NCBI GenBank assembly: GCA_950097015.1
Contig: CATNEN010000002.1
Coordinates: 8,556,001-8,620,000, forward strand
Direction of reading: 5' to 3'
DNA length: 64,000 nt
Source of the DNA: Macrostomum hystrix
Taxonomy: Eukaryota > Animalia > Platyhelminthes
How positions within the stretch are numbered: position 1 is the stretch's first letter; the number at the start of each line of letters is the position of its first letter. Both the position numbers and the translations under genes were made by a program. Under the pieces are notes generated by a model. That model was not told the DNA's origin. It did no database searches and saw only the letters and a list, made by a program, of their open reading frames with translations. Below, piece after piece: positions 11,943 through 21,250 of the stretch.

Positions 11943-14218
11943 AGTATATTTGAGTTCTAACCCTTGCGCATCATTTATTTACACTTGATCCTTGTTTATG
12001 AAATTGATTCTCTAGTTTTGTCTCAATCATTCAGAGATGGAATCGTGCTCAGTTCGTACTACTTACTATATTATCCCACGTCAGTAGTATCGCAGCTAAT
12101 TTTAATCGCACAGCAGATTTTCACTGCTGCAATGAGCATTCTGGCTGATCTTCGATTTCGCAGTTTGTTATTCGTTTATTTTTTCATCTTCATGTAGGTC
12201 ATTCTTTTCATGACAATGTTCCAGAGGCTTAACCATACTTTTGAGCACATTGGGGTCGTATTCAAATCAAAATGTCACTACTCATTCGCATTTTCTTATC
12301 GCATCAGAGCACAGGTGTTACCGCTTTGTCATGACTTGCTTTTGCTCCTGATATTGGCACCTAACACTAGGCTTGATTCTCGAGCTGTCGACTCTAAGCA
12401 GTTTTTTCTGTTCCTTTTGTTTGTTGCTCACCGTTTTCTGCGTCTCGTTTCAAATTTTAATCAACTTGTGTACACACGCTGAGCTGGCTGAACCAATACA
12501 GACTACTATTAGTAGCACTGCCGCATTCCGCCGCTGTCCTGACTGAAATGTCTCCATGCAAGTTAAGCCAAAGCTTCGCTCACCTTCGCTCAGCCAAATG
12601 CTTGACTGACTTATTATTTATATTCTGCAATGGCGAGCTGGGTTGTAACCCGGGCCTGACAATTGCTCTGGCCACTTTCTTGACTTCCTGGCAGCAGCTC
12701 ACTAATTGATGGAACTGGAGCTGCACCTGCGACTTATCGAACTACAGGTGTTAGTCACTTGGCGATGTGATTGAGCTCTCATCCAATATGGCTGTCAGCA
12801 GGCTTTTCATTGGTCGCATCCGCTCTCTATTGCCTAGTACGGCTAACGGATTTCTCCTTAATTCGATTTCAACTCGCGCCCATCGCTGAGCTGGCTTCCG
12901 GTTTCCGTTACTTGCAGCCACCTGCTGCTGTCACAGTTGCTCGGACTTGCCGCTCTTCGTTGAAGTTGAATTGTTGACACCGCTGGCGCATGGGTTTCGT
13001 GCTTGATACATTCGATATACCAATAATCAACCACGGTCACCCCCTGCTTCATGTTTTTTAATGCGGGTCCTTAGCCCAGCCTTCACAAATGACTCATATT
13101 TCGTCTCTTACATTGAATCGTTCTAGTGCATTCTAAACTCAAGACAAGAGTGACAGTTGGCGAGCTGCTCACAACATTCTCTCAGGAGTCCGCTGCTTAT
13201 TTGAGCACTGTAAATAAGGTCTTCACGCTCTGCGTCGTCATCGCGTTGATGAGCATTGCAACAGGAGCGGAAAGAGAGCACGCTGTTTGTCTTCGGTTGC
13301 GAGTTGAGTAAGAACTCATTGTGATCGGATGAGCTCCAGCAACCAAGAAAGCGAGGCGAGTATGCAGTGCTCGGTGCTCGTCTCGTGACTTTAGTCACGC
13401 CTGTTTGGCCCGGGTTAAGGCTGCACGGCAAAGTTTTTTTTGGCGAAAGTAGCAAGCCCGGGCCCTACAAAAAGTTGCTCTTTGCCTGGCAGCCAGGCAG
13501 GGGAATTGGGGAATATAGATTAGAGAAACTCATCCCGATGCTCTCTAAGCCCGCATGGGTAGCAGGAAGTCAGACTGAGCGGCTTAAGAGCCGGTGACGT
13601 CTCACACTATCCAGGAGAGTCGGATCTTGAAGGCATCGTGTGGCCTAATGACATCTCGACAATGAATAAGTTCTGCAATTAGCCTTGGCCTCTGTCGCTT
13701 CCGCAAGCCCACGCATTCGGGCAAAGGTCCGGAACTTCGGTTGGCTTCTGCGTTTGATTCTCGCGGTGGGCAATTAGCAGAGCACCGGTTGCAGGCAGCC
13801 AGATGTTCTCATAACTCTGATGCAACATTTTTTCGAGGGCATTGATAATAAATCTATATTTGCACACAATACGTATTTGTTGGTCAGAACAATTACCGAG
13901 TTGCAAGTCAAAGGTCGCTTCGAATCATTTTTGACGCATGTTTTTAAGTCGACACAACTTTGCGAGGGACTCTGCCATCATGGAACGCATGGGGCAGCCA
14001 ATGAATCACAAACAATCTAGGCTTTGCCAAGACTGCATCTATTCTACACATCAAAATATATTTGATTGACAAAAGATGGACTGTAACAGATTGATAAGAA
14101 GTTTGGGTTGTAAGGGAGCTAGGAAATGTTAAATTGCAATTCTGCCGATTCGGTGTCTGACAGCTCAGATGACCGCGCACTCAAGCTGGCAGCCTCGTTT
14201 CGCCTGCCAATTCCGTAG

Positions 14219-14842
14219 CTATTTAGCGAGCTCGGTTTGAAGTTTCTCTTCGTAAATGCTTGACATGTCTTCGCCAGACCTCTTGCCGAACATTCCACCG
14301 TTGAATCTCTTGCCGAACATTCCACCGTTGAATCTCTTGCCGAACATTCCACCGTTGAATCTCTTGCCGAACATTCCACCGTTGAATCTCTTGCCGAACA
14401 TTCCACCGTTGAATCTCTTGCCGAACATTCCACCGTTGAACCGCTTGCCGAACATTCCACCGTTGAATCTCTTGCCGAACATTCCACCGTTGAATCTCTT
14501 GCCGAACATTCCACCGTTGAATCTCTTGCCGAACATTCCACCGTTGAACCGCTTGCCGAACATTCCACCGTTGAATCTCTTGCCGAACATTCCACCGTTG
14601 AATCTCTTGCCGAACACTCCACCGTTGAATCTCTTGCCGAACATGCCGCCATTGAATCGTTTTCCGTAAAAATGTTCAGCATCCAGGTCATTGGATGTTT
14701 CCATGTCATGCCGTACAAAGTCTGCATTGTCATCAGCCTTGACTTTGTGCTGTTTGGTGCAAGAGCCGATTGAGAACAGTGCGACAATGAGCAGCGCAGG
14801 CAGCAGGCAGCCGCATTTGTCAATCCTTCCAGACAGCCGCAT
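14219..14842 (-). CDS. Multicopy amidated neuropeptide precursor: 13x FNGGMF-amide, 1x FNGGVF-amide, 1x ...HFY-amide (SIFamide-like)
   Basis: 207-aa single-exon ORF with a signal-peptide-like N-terminus (CLLPALLIVALFSIGSC), an acidic spacer, 14 units of FNGG[MV]F-G-KR (Gly amide donor plus dibasic cleavage site) and an acidic tail. Confidence 0.92.
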   Translation of the reverse strand: MRLSGRIDKCGCLLPALLIVALFSIGSCTKQHKVKADDNADFVRHDMETSNDLDAEHFYGKRFNGGMFGKRFNGGVFGKRFNGGMFGKRFNGGMFGKRFNGGMFGKRFNGGMFGKRFNGGMFGKRFNGGMFGKRFNGGMFGKRFNGGMFGKRFNGGMFGKRFNGGMFGKRFNGGMFGKRFNGGMFGKRSGEDMSSIYEEKLQTELAK

Positions 14843-16129
14843 TCTTTAGCTAACTGTGATCTCCTATAGCTCAGGGATGGGACAGTTGAGCACTCAGGTG
14901 GTGTCGAGTTCCGAATCGTTCAGTATTTTAATAAATTCACAGGAATCGAGGAAGGGGCGGCTATTGCAGGTGAGAAATTAAGGAGAAAAATTCGATTGGG
15001 AAAGATTGGACGATTGAGTTGCAGCCTTTTCGAGCCAGCTATAAAACACACCGCATTGGCTGCTTCAATCCCAACGAATGATCTGCTGGCAGCAGTTGTT
15101 GGCCATGTAAGCCAATAGCAAACTTGTGTAATTCTTGGATATTGCATGCAATTCATCAAAATTGATAAGTTGAGTGACGTACTAGTATACCAATTTTTAT
15201 GTTTATTTTATAGAAATAAAGTTTACACCTGTCCCTATTGGGTCGGATGTGCAGCCGACAGTAAAGTCACAGCTATTGCGAGGTCCATCTGAAAGTTGAG
15301 CGAGATCCTCGCTCAATTACCCCAGCTAATTCTGGTACCCATGCAGCTGAGTGAACTGACGCAAAGTGGAGTTAATTGTCACCAGATCCTTGCAAACTCA
15401 AAGTATTGTATATTAGATCCCTGCAGCATATGCTGGCACCAGAAGACACATGACAGCCTAGGCCCTGTGTGTAGAAGCTCCCTTTGTACGATCTTTTTAA
15501 GATGTTTGTAAAAATCAAAAGGCGATAATTCAAAGCCCGCTATGCAACTGGCTCGCGTAGGACACTTTCTAAGAAAAGTCTAAGAGTCCGGAGGAAAAGG
15601 AGCTAGGGAGGGAGCTAGGGAGGGATGCAGACGTGTGAGGATCCAAGCAGCTGCGTGCAGCGCCTTTGACCGCGAAAGGCAGGAACTGATACAGCTGCTG
15701 TTGCCAGCCTGCAGCCTCTGTGATCTCATAGGCCGCCTCTGGCACTTAGCAACAGTGCACTGCTGGGTCCGGCTGCTCAGAACCACCTGCAGCTACTCTC
15801 CGAGTGTCTCCCTCGACTTACTTTTACCTTAACGGAAAGGCCAGTTAAGCACAAACAACTAACATAATGTAGCATTCATCATGGTTCAAAAATGTTATTC
15901 AAAACAAACAGCTTTTTGTTTTGATAAATCGAAGCAGTACTTTTCATTGTTACGACTTTCTTTATAACGTTTGGTTTCAAACTCAGGTTGACCGAAACTC
16001 GCGTATTTAATTCCGAATCTAAAATTATTCCTGTGCTACAGCGATAAGTTCTTACTTAGCCAAACACATCAGTTCCTAACTTTAAGTCCTTAGTTTAATC
16101 CAGAAGATTTATTTTCTAATCCAGTTCAT

Positions 16130-16785: not shown

Positions 16786-17469
16786 TATTATTAAGGTGGA
16801 TAATTAAATAAAAAAGTTTATTGTCCAGGCATTTCGCAAACCTCTTAGCAACAATGGAAAGTAGTTTGAAGTCGGCCAGTTCTGAGCACTCTAATCATGA
16901 GTACACTGAGCTGGCAGCTGGGGTCCCAGATTTATTGGTTTCGTGCGGTCTGACCGTCCAAACGAGCCACATAAAGCGAGGCCGCCCAGACGCTCCCAAA
17001 GTCGGAGGCAGATCAGAAGAAATAAAATCCCAGCTCGCCGGTCATTCCAGGCCCAGCCGTTTCCGCTAGCAGACGGGGCAGCAGACAAAGGAGGGCACAG
17101 AAGGACTCCGGGCCGCTGTCGCGATTAATAGCGGGGAGCCACAGTGCAGGTCAGCACTCAGCCTGCCAGAGCAGCACGGCCCGGCAGTTAATGCTGGAGC
17201 CAGAAAGTATGAGAAGCTAAAAGTTTCTTCTTCATAAGCTGAGCAAGGCTGTAAAAAAGCATTGGCTAGCATTCTGCTTTGTTGCGTGTGAGACCAAAGT
17301 TTCGCCGAGACAACCGGTAGAGTGAAGAGTAAAGCCAGAGCTATAAAAGATTTAGCTGAACTTCAAATATGATTGCAATACGAGCTAATACGAGCTATTA
17401 ATTTAGGCGACTGAACTGCTGCAGCTCTAGCGACAGTTATTGTTGACGAAATATTCTAGCTGCATTCAA

Positions 17470-19235
17470 AGCTGCGATTCCTGCTGCGATTCTAGTTGCA
17501 CTCACAGCTGCGATTCTTGCTGCGATTCCTGCTGCGATTCTAGTTGCATTCACAGCTGCAATTCTTGCTGCGATTCTAGCTGCATTCACAGCTGCGATTC
17601 TTGCTGCGATTCCTGCTGCGATTCTAGTTGCATTTACAGCAGCGATTCTTGCTGCGATTCCTGCTGCGATTCTAGCTGCATTCACAGCTACGATTCTTGA
17701 AGCGATTCCTGCTGCGATTCTAGTTGCATTCACAGATGCGATTCTTGCTGCGATTCCTGCTGCGATTCTAGTTGCATTCACAGCTGCGATTCTTGCTGCG
17801 ATTCCTGCTGCGATTCTAGCTGCATTTACAGCTACGATTCTTGCTGCGATTCCTGCTGCGATGCTAGTTGCATTCACACCTACGATTCTTGCTGCGATTC
17901 CTGCTGCGATTCTAGCTGCATTCACAGCTACGATTCTTGATGCGATTCTAGCTGCATTCACAGCTACGATTCTTGGTGCGATTCTAGTTGCATTCACAGC
18001 TACGATTCTTGAAGCGATTCCTGCTGCGATTCTAGTTGCATTCACAGCTACTATTCTTGAAGCGATTCCTGCTGCGATTCTAGTTGCATTCACAGCTACG
18101 ATTCTTGGTGCGATTCTAGTTGCATTCACAGCTACGATTCTTGGTGCGATTCCTGCTGCGATTCTAGCTGCATTCACAGCTACGATTCTTGGTGCGATTC
18201 TAGTTGCATTCACAGCTACGATTCTTGATGCGATTCTAGCTGCATTCACAGCTACGATTCTTGGTGCGATTCTAGTTGCATTCACAGCTACGATTCTTGA
18301 AGCGATTCCTGCTGCGATTCTAGTTGCATTCACAGCTACGATTCTTAATGCGATTCTAGTTGCATTCACAGCTACGATTGTTAATGCGATTCTAGTTGCA
18401 TTCACAGCTACGATTCTTGGTGCGATTCTAGTTGCATTCACAGCTACGATTCTTGGTGCGATTCTAGTTGCATTCACAGCTACGATTCTTAATGCGATTC
18501 TAGTTGGATTCACAGCTACGATTCTTGAAGCGATTCTAGTTGCATTCACAGCTGCGATTCCTGCTGCGATTCTAGTTGCATTCACAGCAGCGATTCTTGC
18601 TGCGATTCCTGCTGCGATTCTAGCTGCATTCACAGCTACGATTCTTGAAGCGATTCCTGCTGCGATTCTAGTTGCATTCACAGATGCGATTCTTGCTGCG
18701 ATTCCTGCTGCGATTCTAGTTGCATTCACAGCTGCGATTCTTGCTGCGATTCCTGCTGCGATTCTAGCTGCATTTACAGCTACGATTCTTGCTGCGATTC
18801 CTGCTGCGATGCTAGTTGCATTCACACCTACGATTCTTGCTGCGATTCCTGCTGCGATTCTAGCTGCATTCACAGCTACGATTCTTGGTGCGATTCTAGT
18901 TGCATTCACAGCTACTATTCTTGAAGCGATTCCTGCTGCGATTCTGGTTGCATTCACAGCTACGATTCTTGGTGCGATTCTAGTTGCATTCACAGCTACG
19001 ATTCTTGGTGCGATTCTAGTTGCATTCACAGCTACGATTCTTGGTGCGATTCTAGTTGCATTCACAGCTGCGATTCTTGGTGCGATTCTAGTTGCATTCA
19101 CAGCTACTATTCTTGAAGCGATTCCTGCTGCGATTCTGGTTGCATTCACAGCTACTATTCTTGAAGCGATTCGTGCTGCGATTCTAGTTGCATTTACAGC
19201 TACGATTCTAGCAGCGATTTCAGCAACGATTTTAG
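17470..19235. repeat. 12-bp-based compound satellite with higher-order structure
   Basis: Monomers gctgcgattcct, gctgcgattcta, gttgcattcaca and gctacgattctt; diagnostic variants recur at a 948-bp offset (17731/18679 and 17861/18809). Confidence 0.9.
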
Positions 19236-19490
19236 ATTAATTGTTAGATTTCCTGCCTTGACTATCGTTGGCTATTTGCCTAGATTCTAGTTGCGACTTC
19301 TACTCGAAGTAGTAATATTCAAGTAGCGAGGATGCATTTAAACTGTTATAAGATTTGAATTAGTCTAAAATTTAATGAAAATATGCATTTCTCGGTTCTC
19401 TATTTACTGTAAATTTATTAGAAATTTTCCCATTACAATCAGACTAGCCATCAGAGCAACCAGCGAATCAATTGATTGTCTTCAATACTG

Positions 19491-20932
19491 TCAGGCGATG
19501 ACGCCAGTCCTGCGAAGCTCCAGCAGCTCCTCGTCGCCGCAGTCGAGCAGCTCGCGGAGAGCCTCATCGGTGTGCTCACCGAGTCTGGGCGGCGGGCGGC
19601 TGAGCTGGCCGCGCCGTCCGTCGAAGCGCACAGCCGGGCCCGGCACAGTCAGCCGGCCTGCCACCGGGTGCTGGCAGGACACCAGCAACCCGCTAGCCGG
19701 GTCCGCCACCTGCAGATTGTGAGGCCGGTGGGGAATCCAAATGAGCTCATCATCTACAGTGGCCACAATTAGACTGAGCAGCCTCACCTGCGGGCAGGCC
19801 AGAGCCTCCGCCATGCCGTTCACGGGTCCGTGCGGCAGGTCGGAGCCTTCCAGGGCTGCCAGCCAATGAGCGAGCGGCTGGGCAGCCACCAGGCCCTGAA
19901 TTAGCGCCACCAGCTGGCTACGATTGGCCACTCGCAGCCGGTTGCTAAGGAAGCGCTCATCGGTTGCTAGGTCGGGCGAGCCGAGCCGGCGGCAGAGAAC
20001 AGCGAACTGCCTGTCGTTGCCAGCGCCCAGGATGAGCTGCCGGCCGTCGCTGGTGTCGAAGGCCTGGTAGGGCGCCAGGTTCGCGTGGCCTGTGCCCCAA
20101 CGTCGGGGCTCCTGGCCTGGAAGCGGAGGAGGTAACGACGCAATGAGTTTCCTGAGCACAGTTTTGAGCAGCCTAGGACTTAATGAGTTTCCTGAGTACA
20201 CTTTGAGCAGCCCAAATCACCAGTGTATAGGAAGCTCGCAGCCACGTGGGACATTGTGGCCACCTGGGTGTCCAGAAGGTTGGCATCGATCCAGCAGCCC
20301 CGACCGCAGCCCTGGCCATCCAGTGCGTCAGCGGCCTGCCTTCTGTACAGAGCCGCAAGCACCGAGGACAGTGCGTACAGGCCTGTGGACAGGTCGGTGA
20401 CGGCCACTCCGGCCCGCACCGGAGGCCCGTCCGGCTCGCCGGTGATGCTGAGAAAGCCGCCGATGGCAGCCGCCACCACGTCGTATCCGGCCCGCTGGCT
20501 CCAGGGCCCTGTCTGTCCGTAGCCGCTGATGCTGCAGTAGATGAGGCGCGGGTTCAGGCTGCTCAGCGAGCCATAGTCCAGGCCGTAGCGGGCTAGCCGG
20601 CCAGGGATGAAGTTCTCCAGCAGGATGTCGCTGCGCTGGGCCAGCCGGCGGACCAGGTTGGCGCCGGCCGGCTTGGCGAAGTCCAGGCAGAGGCTGCGCT
20701 TGTTGCGGTTCACGCTGAGGAAGTAGACGGAGTCTTCGGCCGGGGGCTCGGCGACGAACGGCGGCCCCCATTGACGCGTTTCGTCGCCGCCGTCGACCCG
20801 TTCGACTTTCAACACATCGGCGCCCAGATCGCCGAGTATCATGGAGCAGTAGGGGCCGGCCAGCACTCGGGTGAGGTCCAGGACTCGAATCCCGGACAGG
20901 GGCCGATGAGCGGCCACGCTGGGTGTCGGGGG
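19491..20932 (-). CDS. SUGCT: CaiB/BaiF family III CoA-transferase (succinate-hydroxymethylglutarate CoA-transferase-like); 5' end not located
   Basis: Exons 20932-20221, 20116-19788 and 19709-19491 with compatible phases. Motifs PLSGIRVLDLTRVLAGPYCSMILGDLGADVLKVE, YFLSVNRNKRS, GYDVVAAAIGG, PYQAF.TSDG and PPPRLGEHT. Confidence 0.9.
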
Positions 20933-20959
20933 CTGCGGAGTGGGTCGATTGTGATGATA

Positions 20960-21250
20960 GGATGAGATCTCAGCGATTCCAGGACGAGACAGGATGAGAT
21001 CCCACAAAGGTTCGAGGATGAGATCTCAGAGATTCCAGGACGAGACAGGATGAGATCCCACAAAGTTTCGAGGATGAGATCTCAGAGATTCCAGGACGAG
21101 ACAGGATGAGATCCCACAAAGTTTCGAGGATGAGATCTCAGATATTCCATGATGAGACAGGATGAGATCCCACGAAGATTCCAGAGATCCCCAAATGAGA
21201 TCTCAGTGATTCCAGGATGAGATCTCAGAGGTTCCAGGATGAGATCTCAG
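20960..21250. repeat. 56-bp tandem repeat
   Basis: gatgagatctcag... recurs at 20961, 21017 and 21073, then decays. Confidence 0.85.

Follow-up and report, generated by a model that had tools for sequence, protein, structure and literature searches.

We analyzed a 64,000-nucleotide stretch of the Macrostomum hystrix genome (on contig C2; hereafter the window) and identified on its minus strand an intact open reading frame (ORF) running from ATG to stop at 14219-14842, which encodes a predicted precursor of the short amidated peptide FNGGMF-amide in many copies. The coding sequence is complete within a single exon and specifies 207 residues plus the stop. Residues 1-27 (14762-14842, minus strand) resemble a signal peptide by heuristic reading, having a basic n-region, a 17-residue hydrophobic core and small residues at -3/-1; the best 12-residue core (residues 12-23) had a mean Kyte-Doolittle value of 2.92, and the (-3,-1) rule placed cleavage sites after residues 26-28. 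Next comes a spacer (residues 28-59) that is net acidic, with 8 Asp/Glu against 4 Lys/Arg, and that ends in HFY directly before a Gly-Lys-Arg (residues 60-62; spacer and site together at 14657-14761, minus strand). Translation of residues 28-59 revealed no dibasic site before HFY within the spacer, so the predicted product is a spacer peptide of ~32 residues with a Tyr-amide end and not a tripeptide. Residues 63-188 (14279-14656, minus strand) consist of 14 tandem units of F-N-G-G-[M/V]-F-G-K-R, 27 bp each, in which the variable residue is Met in 13 units and Val in unit 2. Tandem Repeats Finder placed the repeat at 14280-14658 with a period of 27, 14.0 copies, 96% matches and no indels, and comparison of the units yielded 5 DNA types as against 2 peptide types. 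The protein closes in a unique tail of 19 residues (189-207; 14222-14278, minus strand) that is free of Cys, as is everything after residue 28, and a Pfam scan of the whole protein matched no family. A signal peptide, an acidic spacer, HFY-G-KR and 14 copies of FNGG[M/V]F-G-KR from a 27-bp repeat had been described in the original prediction, which the ORF and repeat analyses found correct in every point; its placement of the gene in a flatworm was likewise borne out by the host, Macrostomum.

Seven public sequencing runs contain this stretch, and contigs from four of them, whose run type is not on record, were aligned to 13400-15600. Two of the runs (X4 and X5) gave contigs covering 13959/13992-14309 and 14587-14890/14989 with 0 differences to the window, the gap between them being the collapsed repeat, while two others (X1 and X2) gave shorter pieces inside 13959-14989. 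No contig covered the flanks at 13400-13958 and 14990-15222. Since genomic contigs would extend into the flanks, the sharp bounds at 13959-14989 on the minus strand look like those of an mRNA of ~1.03 kb, and these bounds accommodate ~147 nt of 5' untranslated region, the coding sequence and ~260 nt of 3' untranslated region. No joints were found in the aligned contigs, and hence nothing pointed to an intron. Given the sharp bounds and contig sets that look like transcriptomes, we infer, with considerable assurance, that the gene is transcribed. A sense-strand CCAAT (15059-15055) and an A/T-rich TATA-like stretch (15047-15040) lie ~50-70 nt upstream of the 5'-most contig base, and this region (15040-15059, minus strand), read from the sequence alone, may with low confidence be the core promoter of the gene. 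Farther out, the window at 15223-15342 showed short imperfect matches to X4 and X5 contigs of 1.9-2.3 kb that continue into unrelated sequence; this segment is probably a dispersed repeat transcribed from elsewhere.

We scanned the 220-Mb Macrostomum assembly with a degenerate DNA pattern for NGGMFGKR, using the reversed pattern as a control. The pattern had 60 matches genome-wide, all confined to three loci, and the control had none, indicating that the repeat is more than chance. Pattern search and translation together defined one gene at each locus. In addition to the window gene with its 14 FNGGMF/FNGGVF units, a paralog on the plus strand of contig C12 (C12:463489-464211; L002:1393-2115) carries 18 units of FNGGMF-G-KR, and another on the plus strand of contig C34 (C34:4066061-4067170; L003:823-1932) carries 30 units of Q-Y-N-G-G-M/L-F-G-K-R built on a 30-bp repeat, the products of which are probably pyroGlu-YNGGMF-amide. 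Both paralogous ORFs also open with a hydrophobic, signal-like N-terminus followed by a spacer, and the three loci together encode 62 units with the common core NGG[M/L/V]F-amide. One public contig leaves the repeat by a loose end whose sequence continues into the 3' tail of the C12 ORF, which suggests that the C12 paralog is expressed as well.

A repeat of this kind might be a minisatellite without coding function in which one frame is open by accident. The repeat is indeed open in all six frames, and the host genome abounds in satellites that look like peptide repeats when translated. One of them (C31:2106363-2106778; L020) is an 18-bp satellite that in one frame translates into an uninterrupted series of FDPILF, identical to a schistosome NPP-26 peptide; its translation has neither cleavage sites nor a signal peptide, so that by this reading of the translation the match is coincidental and serves as a warning to motif searches here. 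Another, L010, had been considered as a paralog of the NGGMF genes and turned out to be a satellite. The window ORF, on the other hand, begins at an ATG with a signal-peptide-like start and closes in a unique tail, and its transcript-like contig coverage also argues against a non-coding repeat. The variation in the coding frame is almost entirely synonymous. Over the 62 units, the eight core codons occur as 19 DNA types that translate into no more than 3 peptide types, a sign that selection preserves the peptide; the variable sites number 2, 0 and 7 at codon positions 1, 2 and 3, respectively, and the two shifted frames would yield 15-16 different peptides. The consensus units of the window and C12 genes differ at 3 bases, all of them synonymous. 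Judged from these codon comparisons, the FNGGMF peptide frame is under purifying selection, and each array is in addition homogenised internally. Array length probably changes fast, by unequal exchange of the 27-bp or 30-bp unit, while selection holds the peptide constant. Furthermore, the peptide and its G-KR sites are retained in three paralogs with 27- and 30-bp units and in a second species. We therefore regard an accidental open frame in a minisatellite as extremely improbable.

That second species is Macrostomum lignano. A word-index search of protein databases returned a single true relative, the M. lignano hypothetical protein BOX15_Mlig004279g2 (P0001), with 114 residues and 5 units. 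An exhaustive HMMER search over 1.84 billion representative proteins gave 375 matches, of which, after motif screening, P0001 alone belonged to the FNGGMF family; the remaining 370-odd were unrelated multi-copy precursors (PxFV-amide, GLW-amide-like) or low-complexity proteins such as FG nucleoporins. Two small metagenome proteins, P0002 and P0022, bear a superficial likeness to the flatworm units, with a hydrophobic N-terminus and repeats of R-F-N-R-G-M-F-[D/E]-[P/S], but were rejected for want of Gly-dibasic sites. In the M. lignano assembly (GCA_002269645.1) we located the arrays at L098:6001-6965 and L097:6001-7045 (NIVC01000162.1 and NIVC01001722.1), where the 27-bp unit recurs 28 and 31 times, respectively. 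They encode the same hexapeptide and are interrupted by frameshifts in the assembly. The annotated P0001 is an artefact: a spliced model that runs across these frameshifts and passes over the greater part of the array, so that most copies are hidden. The four arrays for the identical hexapeptide thus hold 14 and 18 units in this genome and 28 and 31 in M. lignano, and this strong variation in copy number between loci and species supports the earlier proposal that the gene became multicopy through minisatellite expansion.

The M. lignano protein and the C12 paralog are like the window gene in the FNGGMF-G-KR repeat, the 27-bp unit and the layout of signal peptide then spacer. The C12 gene and P0001, its counterpart in M. 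lignano, also have a similar C-terminal tail (..QNP[S/T]Q.), and the degenerate last unit of the C12 gene and of the M. lignano genes begins with FD. The window gene differs from both in that its N-terminal spacer and its tail are unrelated to theirs and in its extra HFY-G-KR site. We did not find a counterpart of the window gene in M. lignano. The NGG[M/L/V]F-amide family was found in Macrostomum only; the planarian prohormone supplement (PMC2953531) contains no NGG-type and no FFamide-type precursor. A search for FNGGMF-type peptide strings returned 0 papers in the open full-text literature, a scope that does not take in key subscription-only surveys of flatworm neuropeptides. Within the open literature, then, we did not find the Macrostomum family of three multi-copy [F/QY]NGG[M/L/V]F-amide genes described.

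Taken as a whole, the window gene is probably a lineage-restricted, multi-copy precursor of amidated neuropeptides, an ordinary kind of gene. The 14 units, each ending in G-K-R, carry the signals for cleavage and amidation that mark a genuine multi-copy precursor, as the original prediction had held. The preproprotein would enter the regulated secretory pathway and lose its signal peptide; prohormone convertases would then cut after each Lys-Arg, a carboxypeptidase would trim the basic residues, and peptidylglycine alpha-amidating monooxygenase would turn each C-terminal Gly into an amide. Each precursor would thereby release 13 FNGGMF-amide, 1 FNGGVF-amide, the spacer peptide ending in ...HFY-amide and the C-terminal tail. 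The predicted [M+H]+ values are 671.297 for FNGGMF-amide, 639.325 for FNGGVF-amide and 798.324 for pyroGlu-YNGGMF-amide. The likeliest role of the peptides is that of neuropeptides or peptide hormones acting at a G protein-coupled receptor (GPCR). The genome encodes a Cu2_monooxygen domain (PHM/DBH-type) and the proprotein convertase P domain (P_proprotein). The same architecture is seen in planarian spp-15 (FDPIQF-amide and FDPIMF-amide) and other flatworm prohormones, where it has been proven by mass spectrometry (MS) (PMC2953531). The nearest ESM-Atlas clusters were all neuropeptide precursors, namely MIP/prothoracicostatic peptide, allatostatin-A, GnIH, tachykinin, PBAN, FLP-1 and TRH, with scores that were all below 0.9 and are a lead on the kind of protein, not on its family. 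Some points weigh against the assignment. PF01082 also covers dopamine and tyramine beta-hydroxylases, so PHM is only a candidate; the run type of the contigs is unrecorded, which leaves transcription inferred; the signal peptide is a heuristic call; and the mature peptide and its neuronal source are predicted from the gene.

The cell type is not fixed by anything in the sequence, and the same structure could belong to the precursor of a non-neural gland peptide, such as a pheromone or a seminal-fluid, adhesive-gland or defence peptide. Both the very high copy numbers seen here (up to 31) and their rapid change are traits that exocrine peptide genes typically show as well. Nevertheless, an arrangement of short, hydrophobic and amidated peptides flanked by Lys-Arg sites is the hallmark of neuroendocrine processing, the look-alike clusters of the protein point to neuropeptide precursors without exception, and its closest architectural matches in flatworms are nervous-system peptides confirmed by MS (PMC2953531), with npp-26 expressed in neurons (PMC10783048). 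We thus consider a gland peptide improbable.

The resemblance in architecture raises the question of whether the window gene is a divergent flatworm member of the NPP-26/SPP-15 group, which includes planarian FDPIQF-amide and FDPIMF-amide and the schistosome xYFDPILF peptides. Like the window gene, the NPP-26/SPP-15 genes are multi-copy flatworm precursors of short F...F peptides between dibasic sites, and theirs are MS-proven in planarians and schistosomes. The multi-copy layout is the same, the peptides resemble each other loosely in following F-[D/N]-x-x-[M/L/I]-F, and in schistosomes one of the copies is TLFNPILF (PMC2953531 Table 3 and supplement; PMC9495596). The FD at the start of the degenerate last unit in the C12 and M. 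lignano genes also fits such a relationship. Against it, the F-D-P-[I/M] core is a feature of NPP-26/SPP-15 that is missing from the FNGGMF units: the D-P pair is absent from 62 of the 62 NGGMF units, which do not conform to F-D-P-[I/M]-x-[F/Y]. Moreover, the genome contains separate and much better NPP-26-like genes. One, on the minus strand at C28:66592-67319 (L033:1455-2219), has ~20 units of AYFDPMGY-G-KK(R) in an ORF whose start lies outside L033 as retrieved; the other, a multi-copy precursor gene on the minus strand at C34:3340633-3341954, has more than 40 units of FDPINY-G-KK. By their translations, these arrays are the best candidates in the genome for NPP-26/SPP-15, here with a Tyr-amide end. 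Because dedicated FDPxxY-amide genes would fill the NPP-26/SPP-15 slot, the NGGMF genes appear to be a separate family, and membership of the window gene in NPP-26/SPP-15 is highly unlikely, even more so than a gland origin. In Schistosoma mansoni, NPP26 interacts with SmGPCR20, a flatworm-specific orphan rhodopsin-type receptor, in a yeast two-hybrid assay (PMC10783048), a finding that calls to mind the possibility of lineage-specific receptors for flatworm peptides.

The original prediction had further proposed that the peptide belongs to a superfamily of SIFamide, SALMFamide and NPFF. Here the peptide does fit the arthropod FNGxxF-amide ending, the precursor architecture does not agree, and the SALMFamide part is outdated. 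The proposal amounts to a flatworm SIFamide/FFamide (NPFF-type) member in which only the C-terminal core of the peptide was kept and then multiplied by repeat expansion, and which would act on an NPFF/SIFamide-type receptor. FNGGMF-amide fits [F/M]-N-G-x-[I/M]-F-amide, the pattern of arthropod SIFamide (..FNGSIF-amide) and its paralog IMFamide (..MNGIMF-amide) (PMC4926255), and SIFamide-type receptors are general in lophotrochozoans (PMC8557429) and have been reported in a monogenean flatworm (PMC9645230). Arthropod SIFamide and IMFamide/SMYamide share with the window gene this ending and amidation via G-K-R. Their precursors, unlike the window protein, contain a single copy of a peptide of 12-14 residues that immediately follows the signal peptide, and farther downstream a pair of Cys spaced six residues apart (PMC4926255). 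In the window protein the first FNGGMF copy begins 35 residues past the predicted end of the signal peptide, after the 32-residue spacer; there are 14 hexapeptides instead of the 1-2 peptides of the SIFamide layout, and the C-terminal C-x6-C of SIFamide/FFamide precursors is absent.

The comparison with spiralians, whose superphylum includes the flatworms, was less favorable. Nemertean, annelid and mollusc SIFamide/FFamide precursors hold two different peptides, one ending in ..LLF-amide or ..GLFF-amide and then one ending in ..PNxN[S/N]L[L/F]F-amide, and those shown complete also carry the C-x6-C tail (PMC8557429 supplement). The mollusc peptide GMNPNMNSLFF-amide, for instance, resembles FNGGMF-amide in its amidated Phe, its Asn at -5 and a hydrophobic residue at -2, but the spiralian core is N-[S/N]-L-[L/F]-F as against N-G-G-M-F, and the ..N[S/N]L[L/F]F-amide endings agree with FNGGMF only at N(-5) and F(-1). 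Likeness to the arthropod peptides and not to the closer spiralian ones suggests convergence, and short multi-copy peptide motifs are known to converge easily (PMC6188537). By our rough estimate, a four-of-six match to some known F-amide peptide could arise by chance with a frequency of several percent to some tens of percent. We consider membership of the window gene in the SIFamide/FFamide family unlikely, though less so than either a gland peptide or an NPP-26/SPP-15 relative, and SIFamide homology of FNGGMF-amide stands as a testable minority hypothesis and not as a finding.

Two further families were set aside. Echinoderm SALMFamides are also short amidated peptides that end in a hydrophobic residue and Phe. 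Their motifs are defined as S-x-L-x-F-amide (L-type) and S-x-F-x-F-amide (F-type) (PMC3594158; PMC4313774); FNGGMF, with Asn at -5 and Gly at -3, does not match them. The starfish SALMFamides S1 and S2 activate kisspeptin-type receptors (PMC9400282), which puts the proposed SIFamide/SALMFamide/NPFF superfamily out of date. Deuterostome NG peptides of the NGFFF-amide type, which we considered together with the NPS/CCAP family, share the N-G start of the core and an amidated end of a hydrophobic residue and Phe. NG-peptide precursors carry a Cys-rich domain of the neurophysin type. The window protein was rejected as a member, as it has no Pfam domain and no Cys outside the signal peptide region.

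We also surveyed the genome for receptors that would suit a SIFamide/NPFF-type ligand. There were more than 137 rhodopsin-type matches, from which 40 intronless ORFs were retrieved and clustered and representatives compared with solved structures; this comparison covered intronless ORFs, and multi-exon candidates (C5:2970931-2973332, C30:1016233-1022913, C38:29009708-29026601 and C29:1015600-1033276) lie outside it. The nearest solved relatives were aminergic receptors for L037 and L040, NPY2R for L045, and QRFPR followed by NPFFR for cluster D. The best genome match of the Drosophila SIFamide receptor, L041, was rejected as galanin/opioid/somatostatin-like, its nearest solved relatives being the galanin, opioid and somatostatin receptors. 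Two ORFs stood closer to the receptors sought. L051 (C34:6029958-6031553, plus strand) matched human NPFFR1 at 148.6 bits, QRFPR at 144.7 and NPFFR2 at 135, with the next family at 111, and its intronless paralog L055 (C39:1818897-1820081, plus strand) likewise had human NPFFR1/QRFPR/NPFFR2 as its nearest solved relatives. They were the sole peptide-type receptors tested whose scores against arthropod SIFamide receptors clearly exceeded those against the remaining references (129 vs 101 bits for L051 and 103 vs 87 bits for L055), and in a quick maximum-likelihood tree they were placed, weakly, beside the SIFamide-receptor clade (SH-aLRT, the Shimodaira-Hasegawa-like approximate likelihood ratio test, 84), a grouping that involves long branches in a tree built without NPFFR, QRFPR or spiralian references. 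On the opposing side, the Drosophila SIFamide receptor and a profile of 12 SIFamide-receptor sequences found no stand-out ortholog in the genome, as the best matches, at 123-152 bits and 29-32% identity, were spread over several receptor groups. A database search with the SIFamide receptor listed arthropod orthologs only.

From these sequence comparisons, L051 and L055 are candidate NPFF/SIFamide/QRFP-type receptors of Macrostomum. That FNGGMF-amide and pyroGlu-YNGGMF-amide are the Macrostomum ligands of such receptors, with L051 and L055 as the candidates, is doubtful, to the same degree as the family membership. Under that view, an ancient single-copy SIFamide-type gene would have been pared down to the core that binds the receptor and then reconstituted as multi-copy genes resembling minisatellites. 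Apart from L051 and L055, the four members of cluster D are paralogous intronless GPCRs (L048, C37:2820611..; L049, C39:11103334..; L050, C34:5030647..; L053, C3:5239938..) that grouped with the insect orphan receptors CG13995/BNGR-A35, a type whose ligand is unknown in any animal (PMC4926255).

As to the neighborhood of the genes, each of the two M. lignano peptide genes has a Usp-domain gene upstream of it, at a distance of ~1.6 kb in L098 and ~4.1 kb in L097. No synteny with this Usp locus was seen in the window, where the neighbors are a satellite and a CoA-transferase III gene. The satellite (17437-19240) is ~1.8 kb long, lies 2.6 kb upstream of the peptide gene and has several open frames rich in Ala, Ile and Arg. 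Beyond it, two adjoining ORFs on the minus strand at 19491-21007 jointly match CoA-transferase family III (PF02515 positions 1-215 and 213-336) and are probably parts of a single gene that an intron or a frameshift interrupts.

Flatworm neuropeptide repertoires are patchy outside planarians and parasites, and Macrostomum is a laboratory model with transgenesis and RNA interference. With three genes, 62 near-identical predicted amidated peptides of exact predicted masses and named receptor candidates, a clean test of peptide-receptor pairing is possible. The public M. lignano gene model had concealed most copies of a family that is also an example of concerted evolution, in which arrays range from 14 to 31 units between loci and species with the peptide unchanged. 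The NGGMF family makes it possible to test concretely for a flatworm ligand of the SIFamide/NPFF system. If FNGGMF-amide proved to be one, it would be the first flatworm ligand for the bilaterian NPFF/SIFamide system and a clear case in which the architecture of a precursor was remodelled while the peptide-receptor pair persisted.

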